Below, piece by piece: positions 5,943-28,748 of a stretch of DNA of 64,000 bases. Source of the stretch: Epithemia pelagica (Eukaryota > Protista > Bacillariophyta); contig OX337229.1 in assembly GCA_946965045.2 (NCBI GenBank), forward strand, positions 3,162,001 through 3,226,000, written 5' to 3'. A model generated the notes under the pieces. That model was not told the origin of the DNA. It saw only the letters and a list, made by a program, of their open reading frames with translations, and made no database searches. A program made the position numbers and the translations under genes. The number at the start of each line of letters is the position of its first letter. Within the stretch, counting starts at the first letter, position 1.

Positions 5943-6226
5943 TAGCCTCTTTTGACTATTCAGAGTTCTTCCAGTCCATCAGGACCAAGGAAGGGTGCGT
6001 TTCACTATCTTGCGCATGACTCATGAGATCGTACCATTGCAAATTTTCTGAATCGATTATGTCAGTCTTCTTGCTTGGCATAGCGTACGAACGCTTAGTC
6101 CACCTCACACTTCACAACCACCCCTCTCAAATTTTAGATACAGAAACGGGCGAAGTCCGCATAAAATGTTAATACCATCACCATAGAAGAACTTCATATG
6201 TCCCAAGGGGAATTTGCCCACACGAT

Positions 6227-6895
6227 CTACCTGTGTTTTGAAATAGAGGTATGGCCCATTTTCTCAACTCTATCAATAAGAGAATCGACAGCTTGGGTAA
6301 AAAGTTCACTTCGAATAGGCATTTCGAGTTCATAGAACGGGTCTAACAGAAACAAAATGAAGAGTGAGCAAACACGTTTGGTGTTATCTGGGCACAGGGC
6401 ACGGACGAGCAAAGACAAGGATAGAGCATTATTTTTGTACCTTTGCAAACACATTCTGCGTAAAGGACGTAGATCTCCCTTAGCACACTGTCAAGATCCA
6501 CTGTGGCTCCAGGTTCAGCTGTTATGACAAATTTAATTCCAGTGACAGTTTGCAAACACCGAAGCTCCATTCCACCAGCCACAATTCTTTCAATGCCGTC
6601 ATCGGCACCAGCTGTAAAGACAAGGGGGACAGAGAATGAGAATCAAAGATCTCCCACCACTCCGTACCGACGAATGATACCTCAATATAGCTTTAACAGT
6701 GGAATACTTACAGACATTTTTCCCGTTAGGTAAGCGAAGCGGAGACGCTTCGGAGGCAATTGCATGCAGTGAATGGAATGTCGAACCAATGCGCAAAAAT
6801 TCATTGGTGCTGATCTTCGGAGCTCTGGCTGACAACGGTCGGTGATGGATCAGCCCACCACTCTTGTTGACGATGAAGAGATGCAGAAAACCCAT
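6227..6895 (-). CDS. TRAPPC4: TRAPP complex subunit 4 (Trs23/synbindin), 3 exons
   Basis: Exon pieces MGFLHLFIVNKSGGLI..FLRIGSTFHSLHAI, CLQTVTGIKFVITAEP..LREIYVLYAECVCK and DPFYELEMPIRSELF are joined by GT-AG introns. Confidence 0.9.
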
Positions 6896-8067
6896 ATTTA
6901 CTGCCTATTGATATGAAAGTGGATCAACAGAGATCTACACTTTCTCTAATCTGCCTTTAGGAGAAATCAGGAAACCCGAGACCTTTCGGCCGAGCTGCAG
7001 CCTACAGCATAGCATGGGTAGGCTAGAGAGATGCTTTGCATCACACAACCAAAACCACATCCCGCTCCTATTTTTTCGCTGAAGAGAGAGTCGTCTGTCT
7101 TCAATTTGATATTGAGCAGTTCTAGAGGTATGACTTTAATTGTTAGACGTCGTCTATATTAGATTGCCATCGACCAATCATGCAAGCCCAATTAAATTTC
7201 ATATCTTTACGGTATTCCATTGCAACGATTCTTGGGACGATATCTGGAGTCTCATTTGCCAATGTACGCTTTTCCGATCTTTCATCACTGAATAGTTAGT
7301 GATGACCGCCCTCTTCGTCATGATGATGACCTCCGGAATGTTCCCAAGGAAAGCGCAAGCCAATCAAGACTTCACCATCACAACGAATTCGATGAAAAAC
7401 CCAGAGCCACATTACGACCCCGATAAATTCGGAATACATTGTGAGATTTTCATCGACATACATGAATTTTCTCTCACTGAAATTCGAAAGACGGAGTTAT
7501 GAAAGCAACATGTGGTGAGAAACGCAAGCGAAGCAGCAGTCTTTCTGCGACCGTGATCAAGACCTGACACCTACCCGCCACCCATTCTTCGAATCGCCAT
7601 GTGGTTTGTCGACTGCATCGTTCTGTGCAGCGGTTTTCGAAAAAGCGCGCTATTTACTGCTCGAGAGAACATGGTCGGATGCTTTTTGTTTTTGCTTGTT
7701 GTGGTCCGCCCTTGATGCTTGATGTGTCTCTGTGTTGATGCGGCGCTGATTTATGGACGAAGCTTTATCTCTAACGCTAGTGAGCACTCTACCCACATTC
7801 GTCTTCGTCTTCTATTTTAGGCTTTGCGTACCCCAAGCGTGTCCTCCGCCTCTTATCGTCTCATTCACGAATCCGTACGACTCATAGGGAATCCAAATCT
7901 GTGCGGTCGCGGATTCTCTCCAGAGTCCAGAGATGCCAATAATCCGAGAGAAAAGAACCGAGTCCTGCAATACGGAACAACCGAAAGGGATAGAGTGACC
8001 AAGACGAACCCGCCGGACGACTATCCCCGTAAGCATACCCTCCCGCGCCCCTGCCCCCCTCTCCACG

Positions 8068-11000
8068 ATGGTGGAAAGCGCGGACCCACCGTGGGCGTTA
8101 CCGGTAAACCCAACTTCGCCCCACCCCACGGTAAAAACACGCACCATGCCCTTCGGGCTCGCTCCCATCCGAGCACCTCCGCCGATCCAGGACGACCGGC
8201 TCCCGTCACGCAGGGCGAACAACAACAACACCATGGACAAACTCCATGGTCTTCGATACTGCAATCGAAACAAGGACAATAGTCGACAAAGACGCCATGG
8301 TCGAACCCCTCCCCTGGCCACCACCCAAAACACCCCGATCGCCAAAAGCCGGCGTCCGACCGCCCCACCAGCCACACCAGGCCAACAAAGAGCCAAAACA
8401 ACCACACCACCTCGGTCCAAACAACCAGCAACGGAACCCAAAGCCTCGCACGACGACAACAAACCAAGACGTCACCAACCAACCATGCCAGATCCCAGCA
8501 AGCCAGGCCACCTCCGTAATACCACAAAATCGGTCGCCACCCAGACAGACAACCGGTACTCCGACAACCCGCCACGTCGACATCCAACCGTCGACATGGC
8601 CAGCATCGCCAACAAACACCACCGGAAAAACGAGCACACTCATCCGACATCCTCAAACCCGCTCACAATGCCGAACAGGTTCAAGTCGTCATTGGAAATC
8701 AACGAGAACACAACGCCCACCGGAACTCAAGCCGCCAGTATGCAAGCCCATTCGAAACTCGCCCACTCCTCCAGAAAGAAGCCGGCTTCCGCCATGCTCC
8801 GCTCTGCCACCACCCGCTCCCAGACGGGAGCACACAAGAAAGGGGGGACCGCTCCCGACGAAGCAAACCCTAACCAGCAAGCTATCCAAGGTAACACCAC
8901 GCTCGCTGCAGTCAACCGCCGCGAACAAGACGTCAACCCCATCACACCAGACCCGGTCCAGCGCAAGAAAAACCAAAACATTCACTCAACCAAAAAACCC
9001 ACCGAAAAAAACCCAGAAAAAGAACAACAAAACAACCAGAACAACACCACCGCCACTAACACCCCGAACAACAACCAGCACCCCCACAACCAAGCCCACA
9101 ACCAAGAAGAAAACACCAACAACGACACCAACACCCACAACCAAGGAGAAAACACCAACAACGAAACCAACAACGACAACACCACGGCAGCAGAAGCCAC
9201 CAACCCCAACCACGACACCGACAACACAGCAAACACTCAGGACGACATCAACCGCCATACCTCCAACACGGCAACACCACCCCGTCGATTCCACCACTCC
9301 AACCGCATCACCACTGCCCACACGACGCCACCGCACGACAACGAAGCATACGCCACCACCGACCACGACGACGACGGGCAAGACATCGACGACACCACCA
9401 ACGCCACACCCTCGACAACGACACCCCTCCCTCCGCCAATTCGAAACCCCTACAAGTCCCCGACCACCAAACCTCTCACTCACAGCGGAACCTCCAACAA
9501 AGACCCACCCGCAGCAATCCACCTCAACCTGGTCGTCCGTCACAAAGCCAACCACCAGGAAGAAGCTGCCCTCCCACGAATCACCGAAACGGCACTGAAA
9601 CAACACTTTAACCAAGTGTTCAAACACCACGAACCGCGCGAGGACCCCATGTGGCTACGGGTCCACCGCGTCGAGTTCATCGAGACAAAACAACCGGCAC
9701 GAACAAAAGGAAACAACGACAAAGGACCACGCGGCCACAGCTCGTCCTTCCACCTCACCTTGAGCCCTGCGCCAGCGAACGACGCCTTCGACATGGAAAA
9801 CTACCTCGAGCAGGCCCTACGGTTCGCCACACAAATGTGGCACAAACACCACCGCGACGATTTTCGAAACGACGAACACGGCGCACAATGGATTCTCCGC
9901 CATGGAGCACAACAGTCGAACCCAACCTTGAACCCTCGATTCAAGGAATTCGACATCTACATCCCTGCATGCAACAACCGCATCGCAACGACCCAAGGCA
10001 TAATCGCTGGAATCCCAGCCATCGCTGTAAAACACCGCCGCGGATACCTTGACATAACCACCACCATTCACGACCATCTCTTCGGACACCTCCCCAGCCA
10101 GTTCCAACTGTTCGACGACTTCAGCCAACACTTCGGCTGCCGCGACGGCACCTTCAGCGGAGACCTACGCAACAAGCAGCGCGGTCAGGTACCAGTTATC
10201 TATTTCTCCGCGTCCTCCAGGCACAACTTCGAACTCTTTTTACGTGCCTACAACAAATTTCACCAAGCCGCCAAGGGCAACGAAATCACGTGGCGCGAAA
10301 ACGCCCTTCAAATACTTCCAATACCTAAGAACCAACAAACCAGAACCACGACACTAGAGGCCTTGAAGGACCTCGACCAACACTTCGGGGCAAGCGTCCG
10401 CATTCGTCTCTACCCATTGAACGATTTAGCCACCGAAAGCGAGTGGGACGAACTCACAGAAATCCCCCACTACCAGGCAGCCTACCCTGAGTTCACTCAC
10501 CACGACCCAGAACCTATAGCTTATTACCTGCACCTACTCCGCACACCGGACACACACCACCTGAACGCAACAACCATTCGGAACTATCCGGGTTTTCCAA
10601 CGAACATCCTCCGTCCAACCATGGCGTCCACAGTTGCAGCACCACCGGCACCGGGACAGGAAAACACCAACAACGAACTAACCCAACAACAGGCCACACA
10701 TACTTCACGGCTTTTGGACCTCACCCGCCGAATCACACAACGCAACCAGATCAACGGGGAGAACCAAAGTGGCGAAAGCACCACAACCACAACACCTACA
10801 CGGCCAAGGTCCACCACCCCGACAACTCCGCCCCCGAGAAAACGTTCAGCACCATCCACCGACACACCAACAACCAACGACAACGAACACAACAGTGATC
10901 CCTACGAAGACAACTCAAACTGGACGACGGTCGCCGACACCGCCGCCCGCATCATACACAACAGATACAACCAAGACGATTACGAGATCAATGCAGACAG

Positions 11001-11469
11001 CCAGAACACCTTCTCCACCCTCTCGTCCACCAACCGCTACTCCGTCCTCGGGGAACGCCCAGACGACTCTTACAACGAAGAGTACGACCGGTACCATGGA
11101 GGAAACCCAAACGATGTAGAGATGGACGAAGAAGAACCCGACAAATGGGATAACATGTCCGAATCCGGCCGTTCCCACCCCCTCCTTCAACCAGACAACG
11201 ACAACCAAGCAAACAACCCCTCACAGAACACGGCAGATGAACTACACCAGATCGCCGCCTTCGTGCACCAGCACAACAGCTCTCAACTCCCCGCGTTAGA
11301 GGAATACATAGAGAAAATACAGTCCTTTTCGACGGACACCGACGCGAAAGACGTCTGGGATTTTGCGGAGCGGCTCGTAAAGCAGAAACGGCCGCTCGAT
11401 TCCCACGTCGCCGGCACCCGCACCGGCCATGTGGACCCGCATGCGACACAGGGCCAAGGGGCCAAATGA
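8068..11469 (+). CDS. Retrotransposon ORF1 (1133 aa; low-complexity T/N/P-rich flanks, structured core ~9500-10600)
   Basis: Long uninterrupted ORF whose TGA overlaps the next ATG (ATGA at 11466-11469). Confidence 0.75.
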   Translation: MVESADPPWALPVNPTSPHPTVKTRTMPFGLAPIRAPPPIQDDRLPSRRANNNNTMDKLHGLRYCNRNKDNSRQRRHGRTPPLATTQNTPIAKSRRPTAPPATPGQQRAKTTTPPRSKQPATEPKASHDDNKPRRHQPTMPDPSKPGHLRNTTKSVATQTDNRYSDNPPRRHPTVDMASIANKHHRKNEHTHPTSSNPLTMPNRFKSSLEINENTTPTGTQAASMQAHSKLAHSSRKKPASAMLRSATTRSQTGAHKKGGTAPDEANPNQQAIQGNTTLAAVNRREQDVNPITPDPVQRKKNQNIHSTKKPTEKNPEKEQQNNQNNTTATNTPNNNQHPHNQAHNQEENTNNDTNTHNQGENTNNETNNDNTTAAEATNPNHDTDNTANTQDDINRHTSNTATPPRRFHHSNRITTAHTTPPHDNEAYATTDHDDDGQDIDDTTNATPSTTTPLPPPIRNPYKSPTTKPLTHSGTSNKDPPAAIHLNLVVRHKANHQEEAALPRITETALKQHFNQVFKHHEPREDPMWLRVHRVEFIETKQPARTKGNNDKGPRGHSSSFHLTLSPAPANDAFDMENYLEQALRFATQMWHKHHRDDFRNDEHGAQWILRHGAQQSNPTLNPRFKEFDIYIPACNNRIATTQGIIAGIPAIAVKHRRGYLDITTTIHDHLFGHLPSQFQLFDDFSQHFGCRDGTFSGDLRNKQRGQVPVIYFSASSRHNFELFLRAYNKFHQAAKGNEITWRENALQILPIPKNQQTRTTTLEALKDLDQHFGASVRIRLYPLNDLATESEWDELTEIPHYQAAYPEFTHHDPEPIAYYLHLLRTPDTHHLNATTIRNYPGFPTNILRPTMASTVAAPPAPGQENTNNELTQQQATHTSRLLDLTRRITQRNQINGENQSGESTTTTTPTRPRSTTPTTPPPRKRSAPSTDTPTTNDNEHNSDPYEDNSNWTTVADTAARIIHNRYNQDDYEINADSQNTFSTLSSTNRYSVLGERPDDSYNEEYDRYHGGNPNDVEMDEEEPDKWDNMSESGRSHPLLQPDNDNQANNPSQNTADELHQIAAFVHQHNSSQLPALEEYIEKIQSFSTDTDAKDVWDFAERLVKQKRPLDSHVAGTRTGHVDPHATQGQGAK

Positions 11470-14400
11470 GCACCACAATCAGACCAATACGGCGCTGCCC
11501 AGTCCCGAATTGCGACTGGAAGCCCACATCCAACAACAACCACAACAACAACCATAAAGACACCGTTCTCCAACTCAAACAACACCTGATACACTCCCAC
11601 AACGACACCCCCATCACCGAGCACATGGACGAAGCATACTTTCAACGACACGACATGCACGTATGCCTGCAGTGCAATCAACCAAGCACGATTTACACGA
11701 CACAAGGACACCTACGAAACCATCAACAAAATAAACATACTAGGACAATCACCAATTTACAAATAGTTCTCAACACCTACAGACACGCCGATGATACCAC
11801 CAAAACCAACTGAAAAGCAGCCATCGAGTTCCTCCACGGCCTCAATATCACCCCACCACCACTTCGACGAACAATGTGGCACAAACTCAAACAACCACAG
11901 CGGAAAGAATACTTTGTCGCGTACAACAACGCCGTCACTTGGATTCTCGAAGCCACACCACCGCTGAGAGAAGACCTGAAAAGAGAAACCAGACCACACC
12001 CGGGACAATCAGACGCCACTCCCTTCTGGAAACTGATCCTGATACTAGAACCGCTTCTGCTCGCACCAACGTCTATCACCGGCCACAAAAGACCATCAGA
12101 CGCGCTCCGTGCGCGCCACCAATTAATCAAAGAAGGAAAGCTACGGGATCTATACGAAGCCATCTGGAACCCCAACCCCGAATCCACCCAACCCAGCCAC
12201 CATACAACAGCGAATCCAGCCATCCGGAACCCCAACCCCGAATCCACCCAACCCAGCCACCATACAACAGCGAATCCAGGCACCAACCACCACTCCCATC
12301 CCACATCCAACAACGCCACCCAGACGACAACCACGATACCACCAGGCAGGGTGGCAGCAGCACAACGAGCCGCCGACGTGGGGAACTATTCCACCGCCTT
12401 CAGCCGGCTCACCACTCACATGCCGACAGCAACACTGACCCCACAGCGAATTGAAAAAATCAGGACCGACCTCTTCCCACCAAGACGGGACCCCCCACCA
12501 ACTACCAGACACCAAGGCCACCTCCACCGCCCTCCTCCCCCGAGCCAATTCATGCAAATCGACAGCGGACAGTTCGAGCTGGCCCTCCGACAAATGAAGA
12601 CAGGCACAGCCTCCGGCCCATTCGCGGCATGCACCGACGCCCTTGTACACATGGCCCTGCACCGGACAACCCGGGCGCCCAACTCAACGAGGCCATACTT
12701 CAGCAATCTACAACAACTCTTCCAACTCCTCGTCACGGCGCAACTCCCCCCGGCAATACACCTCATTCTAGGAAGTAACTACTTCCTGGCACTCCACAAA
12801 GACACCAACAACCTGGAAAGACTGCGACCCATCGGAATAGGCACCGCCCTACGCAGACTCACAGCAAAAGTTGCCCTGGTCCACGTCTCCGAAACCGTCC
12901 GCCCCCTTCTGATCGCTGGCGGACAATACGGAATTCAAGTCCAAGGCGGAATTGACTTTGTCGCCCACACAACAACAGCGGCCGTCCACCGATACATCGA
13001 AGAGCCCCAGACGCCAACGCGCGCGCTCCTCCTCCTCGACCTCCACAACATGTTTAATAACACCTCGAGGACGGAGGCGCGTAAAATACTCCTGCACAAC
13101 GAAGCCACGGCACCGCTCATCCCTCTTTTTGACATGCTGACACAGTCAGCCACCCCATCATGGTACTTCAACGAAAACAATGCATCGGAAAAACTCATGC
13201 AAACCGAAGGCTTCCCCCAAGGCTGCCCCCTGAGCCCGCTATTCTCCTGCCTCGTTTTGAAAGCTCTCACAAACAGGATCAACACAGAACAACGACTCCG
13301 CGCGGCAGCAAGACTCAAAAACGACAACACATACGACGACGGCAAAGGAGGCCAGGCACACACTGCCTCCATCATGGACGACACGTCCATATGCCTCCCC
13401 CACGAGGACCTCCCTTGGTTCATTCAGCGGTTCGAAGAACTAGGGAAACCTCTGGGGGTCGACCTCAACAAACAAAAAACGCTCATTCTCACCACTACAA
13501 CAGGCACCTCACCCACCGACTCCCTCCCTGCCGAAAACAAACAATGTCTCCTCCAGGCCCTCGCGATGCTCGACCCCCTCCACCCCGAGCAACGCGAAAT
13601 CACGGGAGGCACGAGATTTCTGGGCCAACCCATCGGTTCCCAGGATTTCGCAAAACATTTCATCAACTTACGACTCCGAGCCATGGCAGCCAAAATGGAC
13701 CTCCTGGCGCACCTTCCCGACCTCCAGACACGCAGCCACCTGTTCCGCTATTCGGTGGTTCCATCCATTCTCCACCTTCTCCCAGCGGACATTGTACTCG
13801 CCCACCCAGCACCACAAATCACCACCACCCAATGGCGCAGCCCAACGACGGCAGAAACACAACGCCTCGTCACCAAATTCCTCTCCCAGGTCACGGCCCT
13901 CCCCACGGACGACATCACGACCACAGCCACTCTCATCGCGTCTCTGCCAAACCGTCTCGGCGGACTCGGTTACAACGACGCCTCGGCGGCAGCAAGACCC
14001 TCCATGATCACCCAAACGGCCCGAACAATCAAACTGGCGGCCTCCACCGAGACTCCGGTCCCTGGACCACACAAACACTTTTGGTCAGACTGGGAACACA
14101 GCGACCTCCCATGGCTCGTCACTTACCGGCGCTCCATCGCCCTATACACACACGAATTCGCTCCAGACGCCATCAGCAACCCAGCACACTTCGACCGCAC
14201 CACACATCGTAACCTGCTCCATCATACCATGGTGGAACACACCGTTCCAGCATTGATAGAAGCCACTCCACCAGAATTGCGCCCCTCCCTCCCTTCGGCC
14301 CTTTCTCCCCTCACGAGCCTCGCGCTACACCTCCCCAGAACCGCCGAAGCCTTTCGTCTCGACAACGCCACCTTCTCCACGGCAATCAAACGTAAACTCC

Positions 14401-15392
14401 GCCTACCCGTCTTACCCGTTTCCCTCCGTGGACACAGGTGCACATGCCCAGCTGCTCCCGAGTTGGATCCAGAAGGCGACCATTTCTTTTCTTGCGCAGC
14501 CGCCCACAAAACCGCCCTTTCTAACACCATCCGCGACGCCGTCTTTGACGTGCTTCAGCACTTGGCCCCTCAGGCCGGCATCGTCGAAGACCACCGAGAT
14601 GTCCACATTGAGCCGCCTGGTCTGGCTCCCCAGCACTCACGCAACATTCGACCCGCGGACGTTGGTTTATTGTTGCGTCAACCACACAAGAACGAGCCTT
14701 TCCAATACGTGGCTCTCGATGTTACCATTCCTCCTCCACCGACACGAACGCCCATTCCCGACCCGGCCGACCACAACGCCCTTGCCTCCGCCGCTTCAAG
14801 GCCGCATCAGGAATCAGCGCGCTCCAAGTTCTGTCGAGATGACGACACCGCTTCGCACCTCCTCCGCAACGGTATCTATCTTCTTCCATTCACTATCGAT
14901 CATTTGGGCTCCATGGGCTCATTTGCACAATCCTTCCTCTTCCATCAAGATGATCTGCCACACCCATTCTCCTCCGCCGTCCCCCCTTCATGGCCTGATA
15001 CCCACTTCGGACGCAACCAAACAAGATCCAAAACTCATCCAGCCGCCTTTGCACTGTACGAACAATTACCGGCACTCCCTGGCAATCTCGCCGCCAAAGC
15101 CAACAACAACACCCCCGGTTTTTCATTTCCGGAAGCGCACATCAACTCCATCGGTCATTTTGCGAGGGCCTCTTTATCACACGCAATTGTTTCCTCTCTC
15201 GCCACACATCTAAACAAACAAATTTCCACACTTCGAGCAACTGAATACAACAGCCGTATACAAAAAACCCAGAGGGCAAGACTTGAAAGAATGGGCTTTG
15301 CCCCACTTCCCGCCCTATACACCCCTTTCTCACTAGCAAACTTCTTCCCTTCCCACCACCCACCCCACCAGATAGGCGGCCCCGCCGCTTAG
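11466..15392 (+). CDS. Retrotransposon ORF2: two C2H2 zinc fingers, reverse transcriptase, Cys/His knuckle and restriction-like endonuclease; one in-frame TGA at 11811-11813
   Basis: ORFs 11466-11813 and 11874-15392 share a frame. Motifs: CPVPNC..HLIHSH, CLQC..HQQNKH, LRPIGIG, LDLHNMFN, GFPQGCPLSP, SIMDD, FLGQPIG, CTC..GDHFFSC, RPADV..ALDVT. Confidence 0.9.
12159..12278 (+). repeat. 60-bp tandem duplication inside retroelement ORF2
   Basis: Two copies differing at one base; they encode AI(W/R)NPNPESTQPSHHTTANP twice. Confidence 0.95.
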
Positions 15393-15485
15393 CAGCACAC
15401 GCACAACACTAGCTAACTAAAATAAAAAAAAAAAAAAATTCGACGACAAAAAGATAAAACGAAAGGGTCGGCCCATCCAAACATC

Positions 15486-16967
15486 ATGGTTCATACCCTC
15501 TCATTGGCCACTGTATCGTGTTCGACTTTGCAAACGCTCCTTGTCCTAATACTTCTGGGGGAAGGAGAAGCTCTTGTCTGTCCACAAAAGATTATTGGAT
15601 GCCGTATATCTTCTTCTTGTGATGGAAGATACCAACATGATGTTTTCAGGGGCAACAGAGAATCAAAGTTTGCTTCTATTCCATACACCGCCGCTCGTCG
15701 TCCAGCGAATCCATCTATGCCATCCCTAAGTTTGGCTCCTGTTTCCGCCATCCAGTCTATTCTACATAATGATCGGTCGTTTTGCTTGACAGCTGTCCTC
15801 ATGCTAAGCACCTTTGGAATCTTTCTGGAGCGACGAACATTGGTTGGCAAGGCTTTGTCTGCTCCTCTTGCAACAATGGCAGCTGGATTGATAGTCGCCA
15901 ACATTGGAATCATTCCCTTTTCTTCACCGATCTACGCGGCAATCAATACATATCTAGTTCCGCTTGCCGTCCCCATGCTATTATTTGACAGCAATCTACG
16001 CCGTGTTTTCCGGGACACAGGACCTTTACTGGCCGCGTTTGGCGTTGGTGCGATGGCAACGATGGTTGGTACACTGTTGGCCTACCCTCTCCTTCCGATG
16101 AGGTCACTGGGAAGCGACGGGTGGAAGGTTGCATGCGCTCTTGCAGCAAGACATATTGGCGGAGCGATCAACTTTGTGGCAGTAGCCGAAACCTTGAGTA
16201 TTTCCAGCACAGTCGTTTCTGCTACGATCGCAGCTGACAACGTTGTTGTTGCGCTTTATTTCTCCTTTTTATTTGCCATATCCAAACACGGGGAAAACGA
16301 TTATGCTGACAAATCGAGGATGGAAGCTAGCACTAATTCGGAACCGTCAAAATCAGCAACGAATGACTGGGCTGAACAATCACCACAAGATGGGGAAAAC
16401 GCAGTCAGTGACTCGTCGACTTTCTCACTTCCTATCATGGCTTTAGCACTATGTGTATCCTCTGTTCTGGTAACATGTGGTGGGATTTTGACAAAGATGC
16501 TTCTCCCTCCAGGTACCTCGGCTCTTCCGTTGACGTCGGTCTTGACCGTATTCTCTGCCACCGTATTTGCTCCGTTCTTTTCCAAGATTCGAGATGCAGG
16601 TAACCCACTCGGTATTTTTCTCATTCAAATGTTCTTTGCTGCATCTGGAGCAGCCGGATCAATCAGGCTAGTGATGCAACAAGCACCCTCACTTTTTGCA
16701 TTCTCATCCCTTCAAATTGCAATTCACTTTGGATTCATCATGTCCGTTGGTCGACGACTGCTTCGTATGGATTCTCGCAACCTGTTCCTTGCTTCGAATG
16801 CTAACGTTGGGGGACCTACGACTGCAGCGGCAATGGCTCAGGCGAAGGATTGGAAACGATTGGTTCTTCCTGCTCTTCTTGTCGGTATCCTTGGTTACTC
16901 TACAGCTACAGCGCTTTCTCTTGCTTTAGGGCCAATTCTGCTGAAACTACCGACAGTAGCCCCATAG
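15486..16967 (+). CDS. DUF819-family multi-pass membrane protein with N-terminal targeting peptide
   Basis: YLVPLAVPMLLF, LAARHIGGAINFVAV and LASNANVGGPTTAAAMA, plus many hydrophobic helices. Confidence 0.85.
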   Translation: MVHTLSLATVSCSTLQTLLVLILLGEGEALVCPQKIIGCRISSSCDGRYQHDVFRGNRESKFASIPYTAARRPANPSMPSLSLAPVSAIQSILHNDRSFCLTAVLMLSTFGIFLERRTLVGKALSAPLATMAAGLIVANIGIIPFSSPIYAAINTYLVPLAVPMLLFDSNLRRVFRDTGPLLAAFGVGAMATMVGTLLAYPLLPMRSLGSDGWKVACALAARHIGGAINFVAVAETLSISSTVVSATIAADNVVVALYFSFLFAISKHGENDYADKSRMEASTNSEPSKSATNDWAEQSPQDGENAVSDSSTFSLPIMALALCVSSVLVTCGGILTKMLLPPGTSALPLTSVLTVFSATVFAPFFSKIRDAGNPLGIFLIQMFFAASGAAGSIRLVMQQAPSLFAFSSLQIAIHFGFIMSVGRRLLRMDSRNLFLASNANVGGPTTAAAMAQAKDWKRLVLPALLVGILGYSTATALSLALGPILLKLPTVAP

Positions 16968-20407: not shown

Positions 20408-20757
20408 GTGTGGGGCACAAGCGAATCTTGAAAACGTTCAGTCTCTCTCTGTTATCTCGAATCCGCATCTGACATCCAAACAAGTAGAGCCGGTGCCTTT
20501 GAACACAGAAAGAGATGCGTCAACAAATGAGACAGTCTGATATCCTCACAGAGAAATCGGTAACAGAAGCAAAAGTCACGAGATGAAATGTTTTTCAGGA
20601 AGCAAGAAGCAAAGATGCAATATCCTTCGTGTAATGATTCTCTCTTCTCCATTCGTTGTCTGATTATTTTTTCTGCCACCGGTAAGGATACTTTTGCTGT
20701 TACCCCCAAGCACCGGGTGAGTGTGAATCCCGCCTGAGTCGGAGAAAATGTGCATTC

Positions 20758-23058
20758 GTGTTCTCACCCCCATGGCGCGTCCTCCAAATTTGGCGATTTC
20801 TCGGTGTTGATACAAAATCATTTGCACCTCAACGCCTTCACCGCGGATCCAAACTTGTGAGGCCAAGTGCATCAATCATGGACCCTTCCAACCCATTCCA
20901 ACGCTTTTCCCAGGAACCTAACACTATCGAAGAGCTATCTACGACGTCACTGGTACCTGCAACGAACCAATCTGTATCAACTGCAAACGTTCTATCGGCC
21001 CTCCGTCATAACAACAACGACGACAGTGATGACCATGCAACAAACTCCCATGAGCCCTCTATTCAACCCGTCCGACCCGCTTCCCCTACTCCTTCCAATG
21101 TCCCTTACGCCTTACCTCGACTCGAGCAGGCCATCTTGCTGTCCTTTACAGATTGGCATGGGAAAACAGCAAGGCCATGGCAAGTGAATGCTTGTGGAGA
21201 AGTGATCAAGCGCCACACCATCCAACCTACAGTCTCTCCCATCCTGCGTCCCGTCCTTCTTGTCCGCTCCACTGGTGGTGGCAAATCTGCGGTGAGAGAT
21301 GTATCCGGTTTCCTTTGCGGAGGGATATCAATAACTATTGTCCCTTTACTAAGCTTGGCAGCGGACCAGACTTCGAAGTTAACCCACCTGTCTCTGTCCC
21401 AAGGCCTCCATCACCGCCTTCGAGTGTTCAACCTTGATGTTATCCGGTCCGAGAAGCTGAATACCCTACTTCGCAACCATCTCGAACAACTATCAAGCAC
21501 TGACGCATCCAAAAAACGTGTTTTCTTGTTCACTTCCCCACAGAAAATCACCAACAATCCATTGTGGCAGCAAACCATTGCACGATGTTGTCACAATGGC
21601 TCTCTACGCCTGCTTGCGGTCGATGAGTGCCATTTATACGCGACACATGGGATGGAATTCAGAGCAGAATTTGCAGAGTTGCGAAAGTGTCTATTCAAAA
21701 CCATTACACGGCAATCAAAGATTCCCCTACCCGTGCTGTTTATGACAGCTACTGCATCATCTGCAATGGTGGAGGACTTACAAACGTTGACTGGATTGAG
21801 GTTTGATGTCACCCAAGATCTTATCTGGCCCAATCGTCATTCTGGCGTCCACCGCCGCAATATTTGTCTCGATTTGTCGTTCAAGGATACTGCCCTTAGA
21901 CGGATCAAGGCAGAACTCATCAAAACATGTCAATCACCAAATGGCCAAAAGATTATTGTTTATTCCAACTCCCGGAAGGCAATCCAAAATCTACATAAAA
22001 ACTGCCGCGCGGAGCTTAATCGCCTTGCCATTCAAAAAGATATTCTCTTGGTGCATGGAACAATGTTCAGGGAACAAAAGTTCCATCACACCAACCTCTT
22101 CGTTGGGAAACCATTATCTGACGAATGTCCCTCGACGGGACGCACATTGCGGTTTGATCCTATTGCACTGTTCGCAACTGCCGGAACTGCAAGTTCCGGG
22201 ATCGACTGTGCTGATGTACACAAAGTTATTTTTCATGGAATTCCCACCAGTCTCCAAGATCTACTCCAATGTTCTGGCCGTTGTGGCCGGAGTCCTACGG
22301 CGACTCCTGCGGATTCCTCCTTCACCATTATATTCTCCTTCAATAGTCTTGTGTCCCTAATGACACGAATCTTCATCATTCCTAAATATGAGGAATCACA
22401 GAAGAACAAGGATTCCAATACAAGTACAAGCAACAATGACCAAGACAGCAGCAGCCTCCATTCAAAGCCCTCTGCCATCAATACTCTTTCTTTTGATGCG
22501 CTTGCCACACGCCACTGGACTAATCTTTTGCCTGTTCTTTCCTTATTATGTCTCAACAAAGGTGGTTGTATTCATTATCAGCTGGAGCAGGCCATGCTAC
22601 ATCCATACCATGAAAAGGTATGCGACATGGCAGTTTGCTGTGATGGTGCGTGCTGGCGATGTGCAAGCCCTCGAGTTTCGACTCCATTGGACGGCCGAAT
22701 CGACAAAGACGCGTTGCAGGACTATTTTGTGCAGATCTTTATCACAAGGAAGCTTTCCCCAGCAAAGCTTTCACTGCATAAGGAATGCTTCCTTAACGAG
22801 TTGCTACAGTACGAAACCTTGGGACCCGACGGTGAACCAACCAAAGTGTTTGCTAAAAGGGTATTCCGTTTGAAGGACAAACGAGCAGCACGTCAGCGTG
22901 CCAAAGCCTTACTCCTAAAATGTTTTGCCTCTGAAATCCTCCAGCCTGAGATCGATGGCTTTCAACTAAGAGCCAAACTGGGTTACTATGCGACAGGAAA
23001 CCCATGGATGAATTGCGAAGAGGTTTGGGCTGGATTCAACCTCTTCCCTTCTACTTAA
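20758..23058 (+). CDS. RecQ-like SF2 DNA helicase (element-encoded; true start may be ATG 20878)
   Basis: Motif I RSTGGGKS, Ia IVPLLSLAADQ, II AVDECH, III MTAT, V ASSGIDCADV, VI QCSGRCGR, and a C-terminal Cys cluster. Confidence 0.9.
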   Translation: MFSPPWRVLQIWRFLGVDTKSFAPQRLHRGSKLVRPSASIMDPSNPFQRFSQEPNTIEELSTTSLVPATNQSVSTANVLSALRHNNNDDSDDHATNSHEPSIQPVRPASPTPSNVPYALPRLEQAILLSFTDWHGKTARPWQVNACGEVIKRHTIQPTVSPILRPVLLVRSTGGGKSAVRDVSGFLCGGISITIVPLLSLAADQTSKLTHLSLSQGLHHRLRVFNLDVIRSEKLNTLLRNHLEQLSSTDASKKRVFLFTSPQKITNNPLWQQTIARCCHNGSLRLLAVDECHLYATHGMEFRAEFAELRKCLFKTITRQSKIPLPVLFMTATASSAMVEDLQTLTGLRFDVTQDLIWPNRHSGVHRRNICLDLSFKDTALRRIKAELIKTCQSPNGQKIIVYSNSRKAIQNLHKNCRAELNRLAIQKDILLVHGTMFREQKFHHTNLFVGKPLSDECPSTGRTLRFDPIALFATAGTASSGIDCADVHKVIFHGIPTSLQDLLQCSGRCGRSPTATPADSSFTIIFSFNSLVSLMTRIFIIPKYEESQKNKDSNTSTSNNDQDSSSLHSKPSAINTLSFDALATRHWTNLLPVLSLLCLNKGGCIHYQLEQAMLHPYHEKVCDMAVCCDGACWRCASPRVSTPLDGRIDKDALQDYFVQIFITRKLSPAKLSLHKECFLNELLQYETLGPDGEPTKVFAKRVFRLKDKRAARQRAKALLLKCFASEILQPEIDGFQLRAKLGYYATGNPWMNCEEVWAGFNLFPST

Positions 23059-23091
23059 TCTGTATTACTGAGACGTTTAAAATAAAAATAA

Positions 23092-26000
23092 TTACGTTAA
23101 TGCGTTCCTGAACTGTTCTAAAGCCTCCAATGATCGATCCAACACACAATCTTGATCGTCATCCTCCGACATGGGATCCATCCATCCCAAACTATCCCCA
23201 TCATCCTCCATTTCTTCCAGCCTTACGTACAACTTGTATCTCAGAAAATGATCTTCTCTCTCCTTTCGTTCGACATCCTTCCCTCTAGCTGTTATAACAT
23301 TCTTCTCGGCTATTTGCTCGAGTGCCATTGCAACAACATCTTTTGATGCTGTTGCGTTCATAGGAACGACCTTCATCCCTTTCACTGCAGCCTTTTCTCT
23401 CAGTCCGTCGACTTGGTCCTTTGCAACACTGTCCTCTCCTTCTTTGGTCTCGTCGTCTTCCTGTGACGTACCATCTGCAGCATCCTCATCACCTTCGAGC
23501 GAATGAGTATCCTCAACATCCTCTGGTTCTTCCATTAATTCTGCTGCTTCCTCTTCTATAATATCTTCGATTTGGGTTTCTGGAACCTGTTTGTCGTCCT
23601 CTGCGATCTGTTCATCGTCGTCTTCCAACACGGTTACTTCTTGGCTATTAGTACAGCATTCTTTGTCATTCTCCCCCTCGTTGTCCGATACAATCTCAAT
23701 ACTTGGTTGGGTACCGTAAATTGAGGTATCATCCAGCATTTCAACAACAGCAACTGATTCGTTTTCGCTAAAATAGGAGCGATCTCCCAATGACGCTTCC
23801 GCATCCTGGTCTTTCATGGCCTTAGTCAGGTCTATTTCCTCCTCATTTTCATTCTCTTCAACCTCCATAGTATCTGCCTCATGGTCGTCACGGGCGGTGT
23901 CTTCACTTACGCCTTCATTCTTTGCCTTCGAAAGGGGACCCATCATTGACTGCGCCTGACACAAGACATATTGGTGGGTAGTATCTGCCTCGGCCTTACC
24001 ATCGCCACCGCAGCGTCGCAGCTTCTTCTGAACTTTGAGAGTGGTCATATCCAGGGCTCTCCAAAAATGATCGTGATCGATTACGATGCAAGCATCACGA
24101 GGGATTTCATGACATTTTGCCAGAACAAGCAATTCCATCACCAATACCCGGTTTACTTTACTCTTCGGATGTGTTGTACGTTTGTTTCTCTGGCCAGGGT
24201 CAGCAAGTGCTTCATCACTATATTTGGTCATATTCTCAGACTTTCCCTCTTCCTTCACACGTTCTGCAAGTTCTGCCAAACCATCCGATCGATTACGGGT
24301 GTAGAACTCTACAAAATGCTTAGCCCGCTGACAAGCAGTAAGCATTTGCGAGACCTTGATAAACGACGCTTCGGTTCCAAGATGGTTCATGCCCTTGAAA
24401 AAGGGCATGAGCCTCTCCATGATCTGATCTAAGGCGCTTTCCTTCTGGAAGGCAGATGGCACACTCCCGGGCTTTTGTCGTTTGGTTCTGTTCAATCGGA
24501 GCTGTTGCAGAATTGAAATAGGAATTCCATGGTAATATACCTCCATAAGGCGAATCTGTGTATTGAATGAGTTCCGCTTGCCTGTAATGAAGAAGTAAGG
24601 CAAGTACTCGACGACCATGGCCTCCATTGAGATGGCATCACCATGTTGTTCCGCGTCAAGAAATCTCATATACTTCTTACAGATCAACAGGAAGTTGCAG
24701 ATGTACCGCCTCAGCCAGTAGGGACTCTCCCGAACCTCCTGGTTCAAGAAGGCCAAATATGTCTTGGCGAGGTAGACAGCCAGTTCCTCTCCGCCATTTT
24801 CACCTTTCGGTAAGTCGTCGAGTTTTTCCTGCTTGATGGAATTGCAAACCAATACATCGAGCATAAGTCGGTCTAGCTCTTCGTAGACTATTGCAACCAA
24901 CCGGTGACAGAGTCTGTAACTATTTGATACGTCAACCGGGTCGAGTTGCTTCCATTTTAACCTGTGCTGAAAGCACTGCAAGAATCCACCATAGAAAAGT
25001 CTGTAGATGGATTCTAGCATGTGAAACCTGACGTGCAGATCTCCTGTAACGGGCACAACTCGGTGTATCACACTGGATATTGCCATGGCTTGGCGATAGG
25101 CCTGTCGGAAGGATACTGTTTTCGAATCTGTTATCGCCATCACGTCATCGAAAAATTGGAAGATACGATCGATGGACAAGCCATCACCAACAATAAAGAG
25201 CCATTTATCCATCCATGAAGCACCGGGTTTGTAGATGTGATTTGCTTCATCCCATTCCAGTAGACCATGGAGGTTCATAAAGTCAAGGACTACCCCGGAC
25301 GCTCCGACTTTTGTCGTTTCGTCTAACACAGATACTGGTAGCATCAACAGCTCTGCAACGGGGGGGAGGTGCCGCCACGTTCGAACTACTTGCGACGGAA
25401 ACTGTCGTGCCATTGTGAATATGTTAGTATCGCGATTCTTTCGGAGCCGGTTCATGGAAATATTTACTGTCGCTCGTTTGGGGCACATGGCAAATTGGAC
25501 CGGCTGCATTGTGTAGTAGACGTCTTGTCCTCTACGCCCGAGGGACAGGCAACGTTTAATGGTACGCAATTCAGCGCACCATGAAACCATTTGGACGTAA
25601 GTCCGTACACGAGTTCCCGAGCAATCAAAAGGATTTCCATCGCGTTCTAGGTCTGATCTGTATGTACCACGGAATACCGAAGCAATAGTCTCGGTAAGAG
25701 AAACATGGGTACCATTCCGATTCAATTCGAAGGCGGGCATGTGGTATGGCGCCGGAATATCTTGTTGGATGTATGTCATGACCGGTCGGGAAAGAAATGA
25801 ATATACCCATGAAGGTAGCCTTTCAAGGTACATTGCCATGACAAATCTGGCTGTCACTCTCGTGTAGATTGTACTTTGTCCACTCTGAAACTGTAGTCGC
25901 CGACCGTCCTGCAGATTGTCAAACACCGCAAGAAGAGTCGTGACGTTTCTCAACGATCGTCGGACCTTGTTATCGTAGGTTCGAAGGCATTTGGCAACAC

Positions 26001-28299
26001 GCCGTTCCATCGTTCGTTTAGAGACTGCAATTCCAAACCAGATTGGAATCTGTAGAGCTAGCATGCCATGCCCACAAGCATACTGGGCCAAGGAGAATAT
26101 CATGCCAAATGGGACAAGCAAATGGTTGTTGTGTTTTCTGGCTCGGACAACGAATTGAAACAAAGCGTCAAGGGAGTAGCGTTTTTGGAGGAATCGCTTG
26201 TCTGTGGACGGTGCATCGTCTATCTTTTTCGTGTAGCCGCTCATACCCATTATTGCATTAAATTGTTGAGGAAGTCGTTGCTCAAATTGCGTCGTCAACT
26301 CGCGCAGCTCGTACTCCGAGAGGAATTTTTCGAAAATATTGTTGAATCGTCCGAAGCAGTCGTCGAGTCGTTTGTTCAACTTTTCGTCCAAGATTTTGCA
26401 AAACTTTGGAACTATTTCGGAATCGACGAGAGGGGCAGGCACAAAGGACTGTAATGCTGCTTCTTTCTGAATGGCAGCGATCTTCTCTTCATATTCCACT
26501 TTCGTCTTAGAAGCATCCTCTTGGGCTTGTAAACGTTCCCATACGCTCTTCAACTCGGCCATCATGTACCTGTCACCTTGAGTTTCTTGTATAAGTCTGT
26601 GAAACAGGGTCAGACGATCGTCGCCCTTTCCTTTCATTTGTTTGAAAATGGTCATCCAACTACGCTCAGGATGATAGTCGGCCTGTATAAACACGCCTTG
26701 TGGATAGGTATACAACTCGAACCACGAGATCAGTTTTTGAATACAGTCTCGAGGTGGGAAGGCAATGTTGCAATCAATGGCAGAGAAGACAGGAAAGCGA
26801 AGGTAGATCCCGTTGTGGTTGAACTCAGACATTGCTTCCATGACTTGATCGTAGGTTTTCACGCCCTCCTCAGTTATTTTCTTTTTCGTCGCTTGATTAT
26901 TGTCAACCCATCCAGACAATTGCTTGTAAGGCCGTCCTTGACAAGAAACAGTCGGCAAGAATTCGGACTGACATGTTTCTCGCCAAAGAGTCAACAACCG
27001 CTTGCTATACCGTGGAGGAAGGAGGGATTCGTCAAAAAAAAGAACAATCGCGGTCTCCTTTTCCAAGAACCATATATCCTCAAGGAGTAGAGTCCTCAAT
27101 GAAAAGGACGTGACCACATGTATTTGATTGTTTTGTTCGTTCGGTGAATCGGGCAATGCTGCTGTTTCGGTAGTAGAGGAAGGTTCTACGGAATCACTTC
27201 GTTTCCTTTTGGTGCTTGATAGGCGATTGTAGCGACGTTGTTTGTTTGTTCCGGTCGTTGACCGAGATACACCAGCCGTGAAGTTTTTGGCTTTTTGCAT
27301 AAGTTGCGAACAATGGTTGGAAGCCAATGAGAGAGCTTTGGGGTTGTCCGCCGTAGGAGCAACAATGATCAAAGGTGGATGGAGCTTGATGGATTGTCCG
27401 GGGTTTAGGCAAGGGAGGGGTGGTTGCTTACGCAGAGGAAGGAGGTACGTCCCCTCTGTAATCTGTCTCACACTGACTTTCAGGTTTGGGTATTTCGCCT
27501 GTTGAGGGTGGACTCGTCCTTGCACAGGTACAGATGGTGTGGTAGGCGGTAGGCCATTGTTGGTAGAAGGTTCAGAAGGAGGGGGAACGGCCGTTGCAAC
27601 TGTGTACTCGGATGCAATCTCAGTGTTGTTGTTTGTTGCCGTAGCAGAATCGTTGTTGGTGTTGTTTGTTGTGTCGGGAGCGTTGTTGCTTCTTTCTGGT
27701 TGGTTGTTGGCCTCAACCGCTCGTGACATATTCAAAGGCTTTGGCGGCGAAGATTGAGTACCAAACTCGATTTGTCCAAATGAATGACGACGGTGTAGCA
27801 GGTTGAAGGACAATGAAGAGGCACCTCTACGGCTTGGTGGAACGGTAGCGGTCCAAGCAACATCAGGCGAAGGGCGGTCGGGATTATCTTGGGATGGCAC
27901 AGAATGGTATCTAAAGCGGAGACGATGTGGCGCGGGTTGGGTTCGCTCCGAGGGAATCGTTGAGAGCAAACTAGCAGCGGCACTGTCAAGGAAGCCTGAT
28001 GGTTCTGATTTCTCTTCGTTTGCGTCCACGCGTCCTGCTGCTGCATTTGCCGATGGGGTTTCGTAGAGAGGAAGAGACGACGTGGTCACTTGGACAGATG
28101 AAGGGAAGGGAAACGGATTGGATGGGGATGCTGATGGAGGATTCAGCTGCTGTGATGATGCGTTTTGAGTTTTGGCGATGCTGTTGCTTCTGCCTTCTTG
28201 CGTTGACGTTTGGGATGCTCCCGGTACACCTTGCGCCGCAAAAGCTCTTCGTGCTTGCTTCTGAGAGAGGCGGTGCTTTCGGTGGGAAGATGAAGACAT
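23092..28299 (-). CDS. 1735-aa DUF6589-like protein, putative transposase of the element
   Basis: Uninterrupted ORF with AVFDNLQ, FIVGDGLSIDR, VTGDLHVRFHML, GDAISM..YFFITGK and LDQIMERL, similar to DUF6589 signatures as I recall them; acidic C-tail. Confidence 0.7.
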   Translation of the reverse strand: MSSSSHRKHRLSQKQARRAFAAQGVPGASQTSTQEGRSNSIAKTQNASSQQLNPPSASPSNPFPFPSSVQVTTSSLPLYETPSANAAAGRVDANEEKSEPSGFLDSAAASLLSTIPSERTQPAPHRLRFRYHSVPSQDNPDRPSPDVAWTATVPPSRRGASSLSFNLLHRRHSFGQIEFGTQSSPPKPLNMSRAVEANNQPERSNNAPDTTNNTNNDSATATNNNTEIASEYTVATAVPPPSEPSTNNGLPPTTPSVPVQGRVHPQQAKYPNLKVSVRQITEGTYLLPLRKQPPLPCLNPGQSIKLHPPLIIVAPTADNPKALSLASNHCSQLMQKAKNFTAGVSRSTTGTNKQRRYNRLSSTKRKRSDSVEPSSTTETAALPDSPNEQNNQIHVVTSFSLRTLLLEDIWFLEKETAIVLFFDESLLPPRYSKRLLTLWRETCQSEFLPTVSCQGRPYKQLSGWVDNNQATKKKITEEGVKTYDQVMEAMSEFNHNGIYLRFPVFSAIDCNIAFPPRDCIQKLISWFELYTYPQGVFIQADYHPERSWMTIFKQMKGKGDDRLTLFHRLIQETQGDRYMMAELKSVWERLQAQEDASKTKVEYEEKIAAIQKEAALQSFVPAPLVDSEIVPKFCKILDEKLNKRLDDCFGRFNNIFEKFLSEYELRELTTQFEQRLPQQFNAIMGMSGYTKKIDDAPSTDKRFLQKRYSLDALFQFVVRARKHNNHLLVPFGMIFSLAQYACGHGMLALQIPIWFGIAVSKRTMERRVAKCLRTYDNKVRRSLRNVTTLLAVFDNLQDGRRLQFQSGQSTIYTRVTARFVMAMYLERLPSWVYSFLSRPVMTYIQQDIPAPYHMPAFELNRNGTHVSLTETIASVFRGTYRSDLERDGNPFDCSGTRVRTYVQMVSWCAELRTIKRCLSLGRRGQDVYYTMQPVQFAMCPKRATVNISMNRLRKNRDTNIFTMARQFPSQVVRTWRHLPPVAELLMLPVSVLDETTKVGASGVVLDFMNLHGLLEWDEANHIYKPGASWMDKWLFIVGDGLSIDRIFQFFDDVMAITDSKTVSFRQAYRQAMAISSVIHRVVPVTGDLHVRFHMLESIYRLFYGGFLQCFQHRLKWKQLDPVDVSNSYRLCHRLVAIVYEELDRLMLDVLVCNSIKQEKLDDLPKGENGGEELAVYLAKTYLAFLNQEVRESPYWLRRYICNFLLICKKYMRFLDAEQHGDAISMEAMVVEYLPYFFITGKRNSFNTQIRLMEVYYHGIPISILQQLRLNRTKRQKPGSVPSAFQKESALDQIMERLMPFFKGMNHLGTEASFIKVSQMLTACQRAKHFVEFYTRNRSDGLAELAERVKEEGKSENMTKYSDEALADPGQRNKRTTHPKSKVNRVLVMELLVLAKCHEIPRDACIVIDHDHFWRALDMTTLKVQKKLRRCGGDGKAEADTTHQYVLCQAQSMMGPLSKAKNEGVSEDTARDDHEADTMEVEENENEEEIDLTKAMKDQDAEASLGDRSYFSENESVAVVEMLDDTSIYGTQPSIEIVSDNEGENDKECCTNSQEVTVLEDDDEQIAEDDKQVPETQIEDIIEEEAAELMEEPEDVEDTHSLEGDEDAADGTSQEDDETKEGEDSVAKDQVDGLREKAAVKGMKVVPMNATASKDVVAMALEQIAEKNVITARGKDVERKEREDHFLRYKLYVRLEEMEDDGDSLGWMDPMSEDDDQDCVLDRSLEALEQFRNALT

Positions 28300-28748
28300 T
28301 GATAAGGTCGTTCACAGGCACCGTACCTCGGCCACCGTAATGAATGTGGTGAGATAATATGTGTGGTTTGGGATTTTGTATCAACACCGAGAGCTCAGGA
28401 TCGCGCCATGGGGGTGAGTATACGAAAGCCCTTTTTAAGTGCGACTCGTACCTCGCCCGGCGCTGGGGGGTACTTTTGCTGTGTGTGCTGTGTGCTGTGT
28501 GCGGCGTGATGCGTGATTCAAAGTTCAAAGGTCTTCTGCCTTTTGTACCGCAATCGCAGGGCGATCGGAACAAGGCAGGGCGGGGAGCAGATTCTCTTTG
28601 GCCACGCAAGAACACATACGGCAATTGGCAATGGCAACCAACACATTTCAGCCATCACAATCGGACTGATCAGAAACACCACAATATTCATCACTGTGTC
28701 ATCTTTACAAAGTTTTGTCCTTAAGTAAAGGAATTGTGAGTCAAGAGG

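Follow-up and report, generated by a model that had tools for sequence, protein, structure and literature searches.

Academ DNA transposons fall into two types, AcademX with target site duplications (TSDs) of 3-4 bp and a nuclease, and AcademH with TSDs of 9 or 10 bp and a helicase (PMC10045372, summarising Kojima 2020, Mobile DNA 11:15). AcademH has been described as occurring at low copy number in Basidiomycota, Ascomycota and Mucoromycota and is also reported from animals (PMC10799480). Yuan and Wessler defined the Academ nuclease domain, for which Pfam had no model in 2017 and which is commonest in Pucciniomycotina (PMC5751038). In Puccinia striiformis, Academ is represented by 29 families with a total of about 1,288 copies (PMC12210899 supplement). 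The Kolobok superfamily is characterised by a 4-bp TTAA TSD, 5'-RR..YY-3' ends and a C or D at the start of the xxH motif of its transposase (PMC9587614). Here we describe an element in a 64,000-nucleotide stretch of the diatom Epithemia pelagica (GCA_946965045.2, contig OX337229.1, positions 3,162,001 to 3,226,000 of the forward strand; the window), in which a 1735-aa protein with a match to the domain of unknown function DUF6589 (PF20231) is likely to be the DDE transposase of an intact 7.8-kb DNA transposon of the AcademH type.

Proteins carrying DUF6589 are currently read as ordinary host genes, for example in a stripe-rust pan-genome preprint that lists the domain among those enriched in pathogenic fungi, as possible virulence or epigenetic factors. 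A literature search found no paper tying PF20231/DUF6589 to Academ, and the supplements of PMC10799480 and PMC12210899 mention neither DUF6589 nor PF20231. The chances are about even that DUF6589 is the catalytic core of a helicase-associated, AcademH-type DDE transposase and that this link is unpublished. The layout of the element matches the described AcademH type, and the result is mainly the assignment of a function to a Pfam domain rather than the description of a new system; what may be new is the link between DUF6589 and a transposase, the structural model of the core and the host group.

A two-gene element bounded by a 10-bp duplication

Reading of the ends and a script check showed that a perfect direct repeat, CTTTTGCTGT, brackets a unit of 7,772 bp (20701-28472) in the window. 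Its termini are 5'-TA..TA-3' and its terminal inverted repeats (TIRs) are imperfect, the tips TACCCCCAAGCACCGGGTGAG and TACCCCCCAGCGCCGGGCGAG being alike at 18 of 21 positions. Within the whole window, the patterns of the tip and of the subterminal blocks CTCACCCCCATGGCGCG and CTCGGTGTTGATACAAAATC are confined to the two ends of the element, with 0 occurrences expected by chance. The first-pass annotation had called the DUF6589 protein the sole gene between the TIRs apart from a helicase gene, and this description holds for the TSD-flanked unit: it contains only these two genes, which converge with their stop codons 33 bp apart, and all other open reading frames (ORFs) of at least 80 aa in the range of the element overlap one or the other.

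Three public runs of the organism give further evidence on the boundary: their contigs carry the element at approximately 99% identity and break exactly at 28471/28472, two of the contigs extending from this terminus into different flanks. In these runs the word depth is approximately 2000-2460 over 28272-28470 versus approximately 110-150 over single-copy parts. Because of the contig breaks, the differing flanks and the word depth, the terminal sequence can be regarded as multi-copy and the right boundary as real.

The same contigs show two local peculiarities within the transposase gene. At 27207-27210 the window has four T while the contigs of all three runs have three. The difference could be a miscounted homopolymer in one of the assemblies, or else those strains have a shifted reading frame from codon ~364; with T4, as in the window, similarity to the paralogues is present both before and after this codon. 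In addition, word depth shows a local, approximately 4-fold peak at 24292-24490, the region encoding DQIMERL, and in all three runs a contig joint at 24347/25016 skips 668 bases, its shorter side comprising only 26 letters. Joint and peak together are likeliest to reflect cross-talk between paralogues in the contig graphs, not a true deletion.

DUF6589 and the conserved residues of the probable transposase

The four motifs to which the first-pass annotation had drawn attention occur once each and in the order given there: AVFDNL (aa 791-796), IVGDGL (1036-1041), TGDLHVRFH (1085-1093) and DQIMERL (1291-1297). DUF6589 is the sole Pfam family matched by the 1735-aa protein (E 1.4e-7, 31 bits, aa 982-1241), and the core region submitted separately, as had been suggested, reaches 33.4 bits, both above the gathering threshold of 27 bits. 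The Pfam model covers only strand 3 through the Glu helix of the catalytic core described below, which may be the reason why the family stayed one of unknown function. Sequence searches of the PDB with the transposase returned no match, and a Pfam scan of 82 family members at E values up to 1 detected no second family and no known transposase family. N-terminal to the core, a conserved domain with a predicted SH3/Tudor-like beta-barrel is a possible DNA- or chromatin-binding module.

The family was explored at several depths. A word-index protein search, which reaches close paralogues only, even with a diverse profile, returned relatives of 47-85% identity, all from ENA assemblies and forming at least 18 clusters; this is a diversified family. 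When the core alignment A2 served as the profile for an exhaustive search, 711 proteins were retrieved at E <=1e-3 and 319 at E <=1e-10. DUF6589 is matched by 13 of 22 representative full-length members and by 53 of 82 core fragments, with no further Pfam family appearing repeatedly. In protein-language and structural searches of the Atlas, DUF6589 clusters likewise came first, with members in Basidiomycota, Cnidaria and Mucoromycota; the nearest Atlas neighbours beyond DUF6589 are bacterial IS66, ISKra4 and Mutator-family transposases.

Conservation was counted in the alignments A3 and A4, which hold 39-59 homologues at 20-30% identity. The acidic residues on which the proposed mechanism would depend are conserved throughout: D794 in 39/39 sequences, D1039 in 59/59 and E1295 in 39/39. 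The Asn following D794 (N795) is kept in 39/39 as well, and in the GxxH motif the Gly is found in 58/58 and the His in 58/59, while the intervening D1087 is variable (D 38, P 15, Q 4). Family-wide spacings lie between 220 and 261 aa from the first to the second Asp, between 243 and 269 aa from Asp to Glu and between 46 and 50 aa from Asp to His. Since D794, D1039, G1086, H1089 and E1295 are conserved at 20-30% identity, the motifs are not a product of chance.

Two further acidic residues, E994 in VLDETT (Glu in 55/57, Asp in the other two) and D1291 (39/39), one helical turn ahead of E1295, vary about as little as the DDE triad among homologues that are only ~20% identical. RNase H carries its Glu just after strand 3, a position matching that of E994, and both residues may be extra metal ligands.

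Predicted structure of the catalytic core

An AlphaFold2 model of aa 600-1440 (m2eb6e4a84529), based on an 82-row alignment and numbered such that model number plus 599 gives the protein number, has a mean pLDDT (predicted local distance difference test) of 89.7 and a pTM (predicted template modelling score) of 0.88. In model numbering, strand 1 (189-202) bears D195 (D794) and is followed by strand 2 (211-222), from which strand 3 (385-391) is separated by a mostly helical insertion of ~160 aa (223-384). Behind strand 3 come E395 (E994), a helix (398-412) and a small hairpin, before strand 4 (434-439) leads directly into D440 (D1039). Past this residue, two helices and strand 5 (482-486) precede G487 and H490 of GxxH, and after the helical block 488-671, a helix at 691-704 bears D692 (D1291) and E696 (E1295). 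In the model the core matches the RNase H-like order b1-b2-b3-a1-b4-a-b5-a with a five-stranded mixed sheet. By this predicted order of secondary structure, the region from aa ~785 to ~1330 is predicted with high confidence to adopt an RNase H-like fold with the DDE residues at canonical positions, in agreement with the D-D-(GxxH)-E architecture that had been proposed from motif spacing.

Comparison with known structures had been proposed as a check on the fold. Foldseek with the whole model returned no match; an alignment-based search covering 48,161 PDB representatives found the Hermes transposase (PDB 8edg) as best match with Z 9.0 and 289 aligned residues. It was followed by retroviral and foamy-virus integrases (Z 6.1-7.7, ~120 aligned, root-mean-square deviation ~3 A, within model residues 187-726), Tn5 (Z 7.3), the P element transposase (PDB 6p5a; Z 6.7, 331 aligned), ISCth4 (Z 6.4), Sleeping Beauty (Z 5.7), RAG1 (PDB 4wwx; Z 5.2, 381 aligned), Mos1, TnsB and IstA (Z 5.2) and MuA (Z 4.3). 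Each of these Z values, taken singly, counts as middling. The assignment to a class follows instead from the top of the list as a whole, since the 30 best PDB neighbours of the model fall almost without exception into the RNase H-like DDE transposase/integrase class.

The protein differs from Hermes and other hAT transposases in several respects. No sequence similarity is detectable, GxxH stands here in place of C/DxxH, the ~160-aa insertion between strands 2 and 3 is extra, a hAT dimerisation domain was not detected, and the diatom protein appears to depend on a helicase partner. To our knowledge, this insertion and the invariant E994 and D1291 have no counterpart in hAT, P or RAG enzymes.

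The helicase partner and related loci

The second gene of the element encodes a RecQ-like superfamily 2 (SF2) helicase in which Pfam detects no nuclease or HUH domain; among solved structures it is most similar to RECQ1, BLM, E. coli RecQ and WRN (E 1e-11 to 1e-8). The pairing is not peculiar to the window, as each related locus with enough DNA bears a helicase gene on the strand opposite to the transposase. Four related loci contain the gene pair: in L001 (P0019), L003/L004 (P0048) and L006 (P0001) a convergent DEAD/Helicase_C gene lies directly downstream of the transposase gene, and in L002 (P0035) the helicase gene lies beyond two small ORFs. Identity to the helicase of the window is 84% for L006 and 27-29% for the others (E 5e-31 to 2e-53) and tracks the divergence of the transposases. 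On two ENA metagenome contigs (P0151, P0163), a single ORF joins DUF6589 to a PTM/DIR17-like Tudor domain and to the beginning of a DEAD domain; as the reading frames stand, this is a lineage with a transposase-helicase fusion. A fusion to an XPG nuclease, the hallmark of AcademX, was sought in nine long distant homologues and none was found; the helicase fusion was found instead.

The ends of the element could be identified at two of these loci. In L006 (ENA ERZ21939226, ctg1347l), a paralogous element of 7,832 bp at 5230-13081 shares its TIR tip with the element of the window and is flanked by a perfect 10-bp TSD, TGGAGCTCTC, and the assembly that holds it contains at least 18 diverged protein clusters of the DUF6589 transposase family. 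The distant element in L003 (JGI 3300008157, 7541-14919), approximately 20% identical, is bounded by a perfect 25-bp TIR, CACACTGTAGTACTTCGGTTATGTA, and an 8-bp TSD, ACTTACTC; its insertion site has a chitin synthase gene on one side and a gene for a cNMP-binding kinase on the other. For the element in L002 no TSD was seen and the termini could not be fixed.

Between the window and L006, the ratio of nonsynonymous to synonymous substitution rates (dN/dS) is 0.083 for the transposase (0.057 for its core) and 0.085 for the helicase, at dS >1. Both genes are under strong purifying selection, and therefore both proteins have been kept functional during the divergence of the family. Because the two genes are co-inherited down to ~20-30% identity, are under equal purifying selection and are fused in one lineage, we infer that the helicase is an obligatory partner of the transposase.

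Placement of the element and alternative explanations

Very probably, the DUF6589 protein is the enzyme that cuts DNA for an intact transposon. The first-pass annotation had named it as the recombinase, and the predicted fold, the invariant triad and a TIR- and TSD-bounded element without another candidate enzyme all argue for that assignment. Architecture, TSD length and host range all agree with AcademH and hence place the element in that class. Like AcademH, it is a TIR-bounded DNA transposon with a large DDE transposase and an SF2 helicase; its 10-bp TSD, shared with L006, lies inside the 9-10 bp of AcademH; the family is low-copy yet split into many diverged families; and the DUF6589 hosts (Basidiomycota, Mucoromycota, Cnidaria) mirror the AcademH range. 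It differs in that the host is a diatom, whereas AcademH is known from animals and fungi, and in that the TSD of the distant L003 element has 8 bp. Judged by architecture, membership in AcademH is probable.

An alternative is that the DUF6589 proteins constitute a separate DDE superfamily, not previously described, which converged on the AcademH layout with a helicase partner and TSDs of 8-10 bp and is not the Academ transposase. In its favour, the Academ placement is drawn from architecture, the Pfam scans of the 82 members recovered no known transposase family, and no publication was found that connects PF20231/DUF6589 with Academ. Against it, two DDE lineages unrelated to each other would both have to carry a helicase and to agree in TSD length and host range. 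DUF6589 clusters come from Basidiomycota, Mucoromycota and Cnidaria and AcademH from Basidiomycota, Ascomycota, Mucoromycota and animals (PMC10799480), and for Puccinia striiformis both Academ and DUF6589 have been described as abundant or enriched, so that a separate superfamily is very unlikely. Membership in Kolobok has to be considered as well, given that KolobokH and Kolobok-1_CCri are DDE transposons with a RecQ helicase, in one case on the complementary strand, that Kolobok is reported in the diatom Fragilariopsis cylindrus (PMC9587614) and that its transposases likewise have an xxH motif past the second D. The distinguishing marks of that superfamily are nevertheless missing: TSDs are 10 bp (CTTTTGCTGT, TGGAGCTCTC) or 8 bp (ACTTACTC) and never TTAA, the ends are 5'-TA..TA-3' and not 5'-RR..YY-3', and an invariant Gly (G1086) occupies the position at which Kolobok has C or D, leaving only H1089 in common. 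Kolobok is accordingly disfavoured and extremely unlikely.

A different kind of doubt concerns activity. The DUF6589 protein could possess the fold and yet be inactive or domesticated, with the element moved in trans, or the copy in the window could be dead, and the allele of the sequenced strains with its possible frameshift at 27207 would fit such a history. Against this stand catalytic positions that are invariant over deep divergence, dN/dS values of 0.06-0.08, the many diverged families in the related assembly and the multi-copy termini. Moreover, the DUF6589 protein always occurs within TIR- and TSD-bounded units that contain no other candidate enzyme, the helicase being devoid of any Pfam-detectable nuclease or HUH domain, and loss of activity is thus very unlikely.

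If the protein is an active AcademH-type transposase, D794, D1039 and E1295 would bind two metal ions for two-metal-ion catalysis. The enzyme would recognise the TIR and the subterminal blocks, excise the element and insert it by cut-and-paste with cuts staggered by 10 bp, giving rise to the 10-bp TSD. If Hermes and RAG1 are a guide, the conserved His and the all-alpha insertion might help to handle the DNA ends, and the RecQ-like helicase would perhaps unwind or remodel DNA at the ends or at the target.

Should this assignment be true, DUF6589 gains its first function together with a structural model. Recognition of the domain as a transposase core would correct its readings as a host gene and sharpen transposon masking in fungal, cnidarian and protist genomes, and Pfam/InterPro could list the family among the RNase H-like transposases. 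The AcademH-type lineage would then reach into stramenopiles as well, with apparently live copies. The diatom copies look intact, having clean TSDs, multi-copy termini and two genes under strong purifying selection, and therefore could serve to test why an enzyme of the cut-and-paste kind requires a RecQ-type helicase of its own; they could also show how the 10-bp stagger is set.

Feature coordinates and a neighbouring region

Table 1. Features of the element, in positions of the window; model numbers refer to the AlphaFold2 model
Feature	Position	Strand	Basis
Left TSD copy CTTTTGCTGT, 10 bp	20691..20700	.	Identical to 28473-28482
Left TIR and subterminal region (tip TACCCCCAAGCACCGGGTGAG; blocks CTCACCCCCATGGCGCG, CTCGGTGTTGATACAAAATC)	20701..20830	plus	End-to-end alignment, inverted repeats
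RecQ-like SF2 helicase gene, 726 aa from first ATG	20878..23058	plus	Pfam DEAD + Helicase_C; mechanical ORF from GTG 20758
Transposase gene (flagged ORF), 1735 aa	23092..28299	minus	ORF list and translation; dN/dS against L006 paralogue
Predicted RNase H-like catalytic core with insertions, aa ~785-1330	24310..25947	minus	AlphaFold2 model; structural matches over model residues 187-726
E1295, putative catalytic Glu (DQIMERL), helix past insertion	24415..24417	minus	Conservation; model helix 691-704
D1291, one helical turn ahead of E1295	24427-24429	minus	Conservation
Predicted all-alpha insertion, strand 5 to Glu helix, aa ~1090-1290 (~200 aa)	24430..25032	minus	Model helices 488-671
DUF6589-matched stretch, aa 982-1241 (Pfam model positions 66-309 of 410)	24577..25356	minus	Pfam; strands 1-2 and D794 outside
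G1086-D-L-H1089 (GxxH), directly past predicted strand 5	25033..25044	minus	Conservation
D1039, putative second catalytic Asp (IVGDGL), directly past predicted strand 4	25183..25185	minus	Conservation; model strand 434-439
E994 (VLDETT), acidic, just past predicted strand 3	25318..25320	minus	Conservation
D794, putative first catalytic Asp (AVFDNL), predicted strand 1	25918..25920	minus	Conservation; model strand 189-202
Conserved N-terminal domain, aa ~401-544	26668..27099	minus	Predicted SH3/Tudor-like beta-barrel
Right TIR and subterminal region (tip TACCCCCCAGCGCCGGGCGAG on minus strand)	28343..28472	minus	End alignment, contig breaks
Right TSD copy CTTTTGCTGT, 10 bp	28473..28482	.	Perfect direct repeat with left copy

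Outside the element, the part of the window at 8001-16000 is strongly skewed in composition, with a GC content of 0.53-0.58, a GC skew of -0.32 to -0.39 and an AT skew of up to +0.55. This region spans the long ORFs 8068-11469 and 11874-15392 and is probably repetitive or low-complexity coding sequence.
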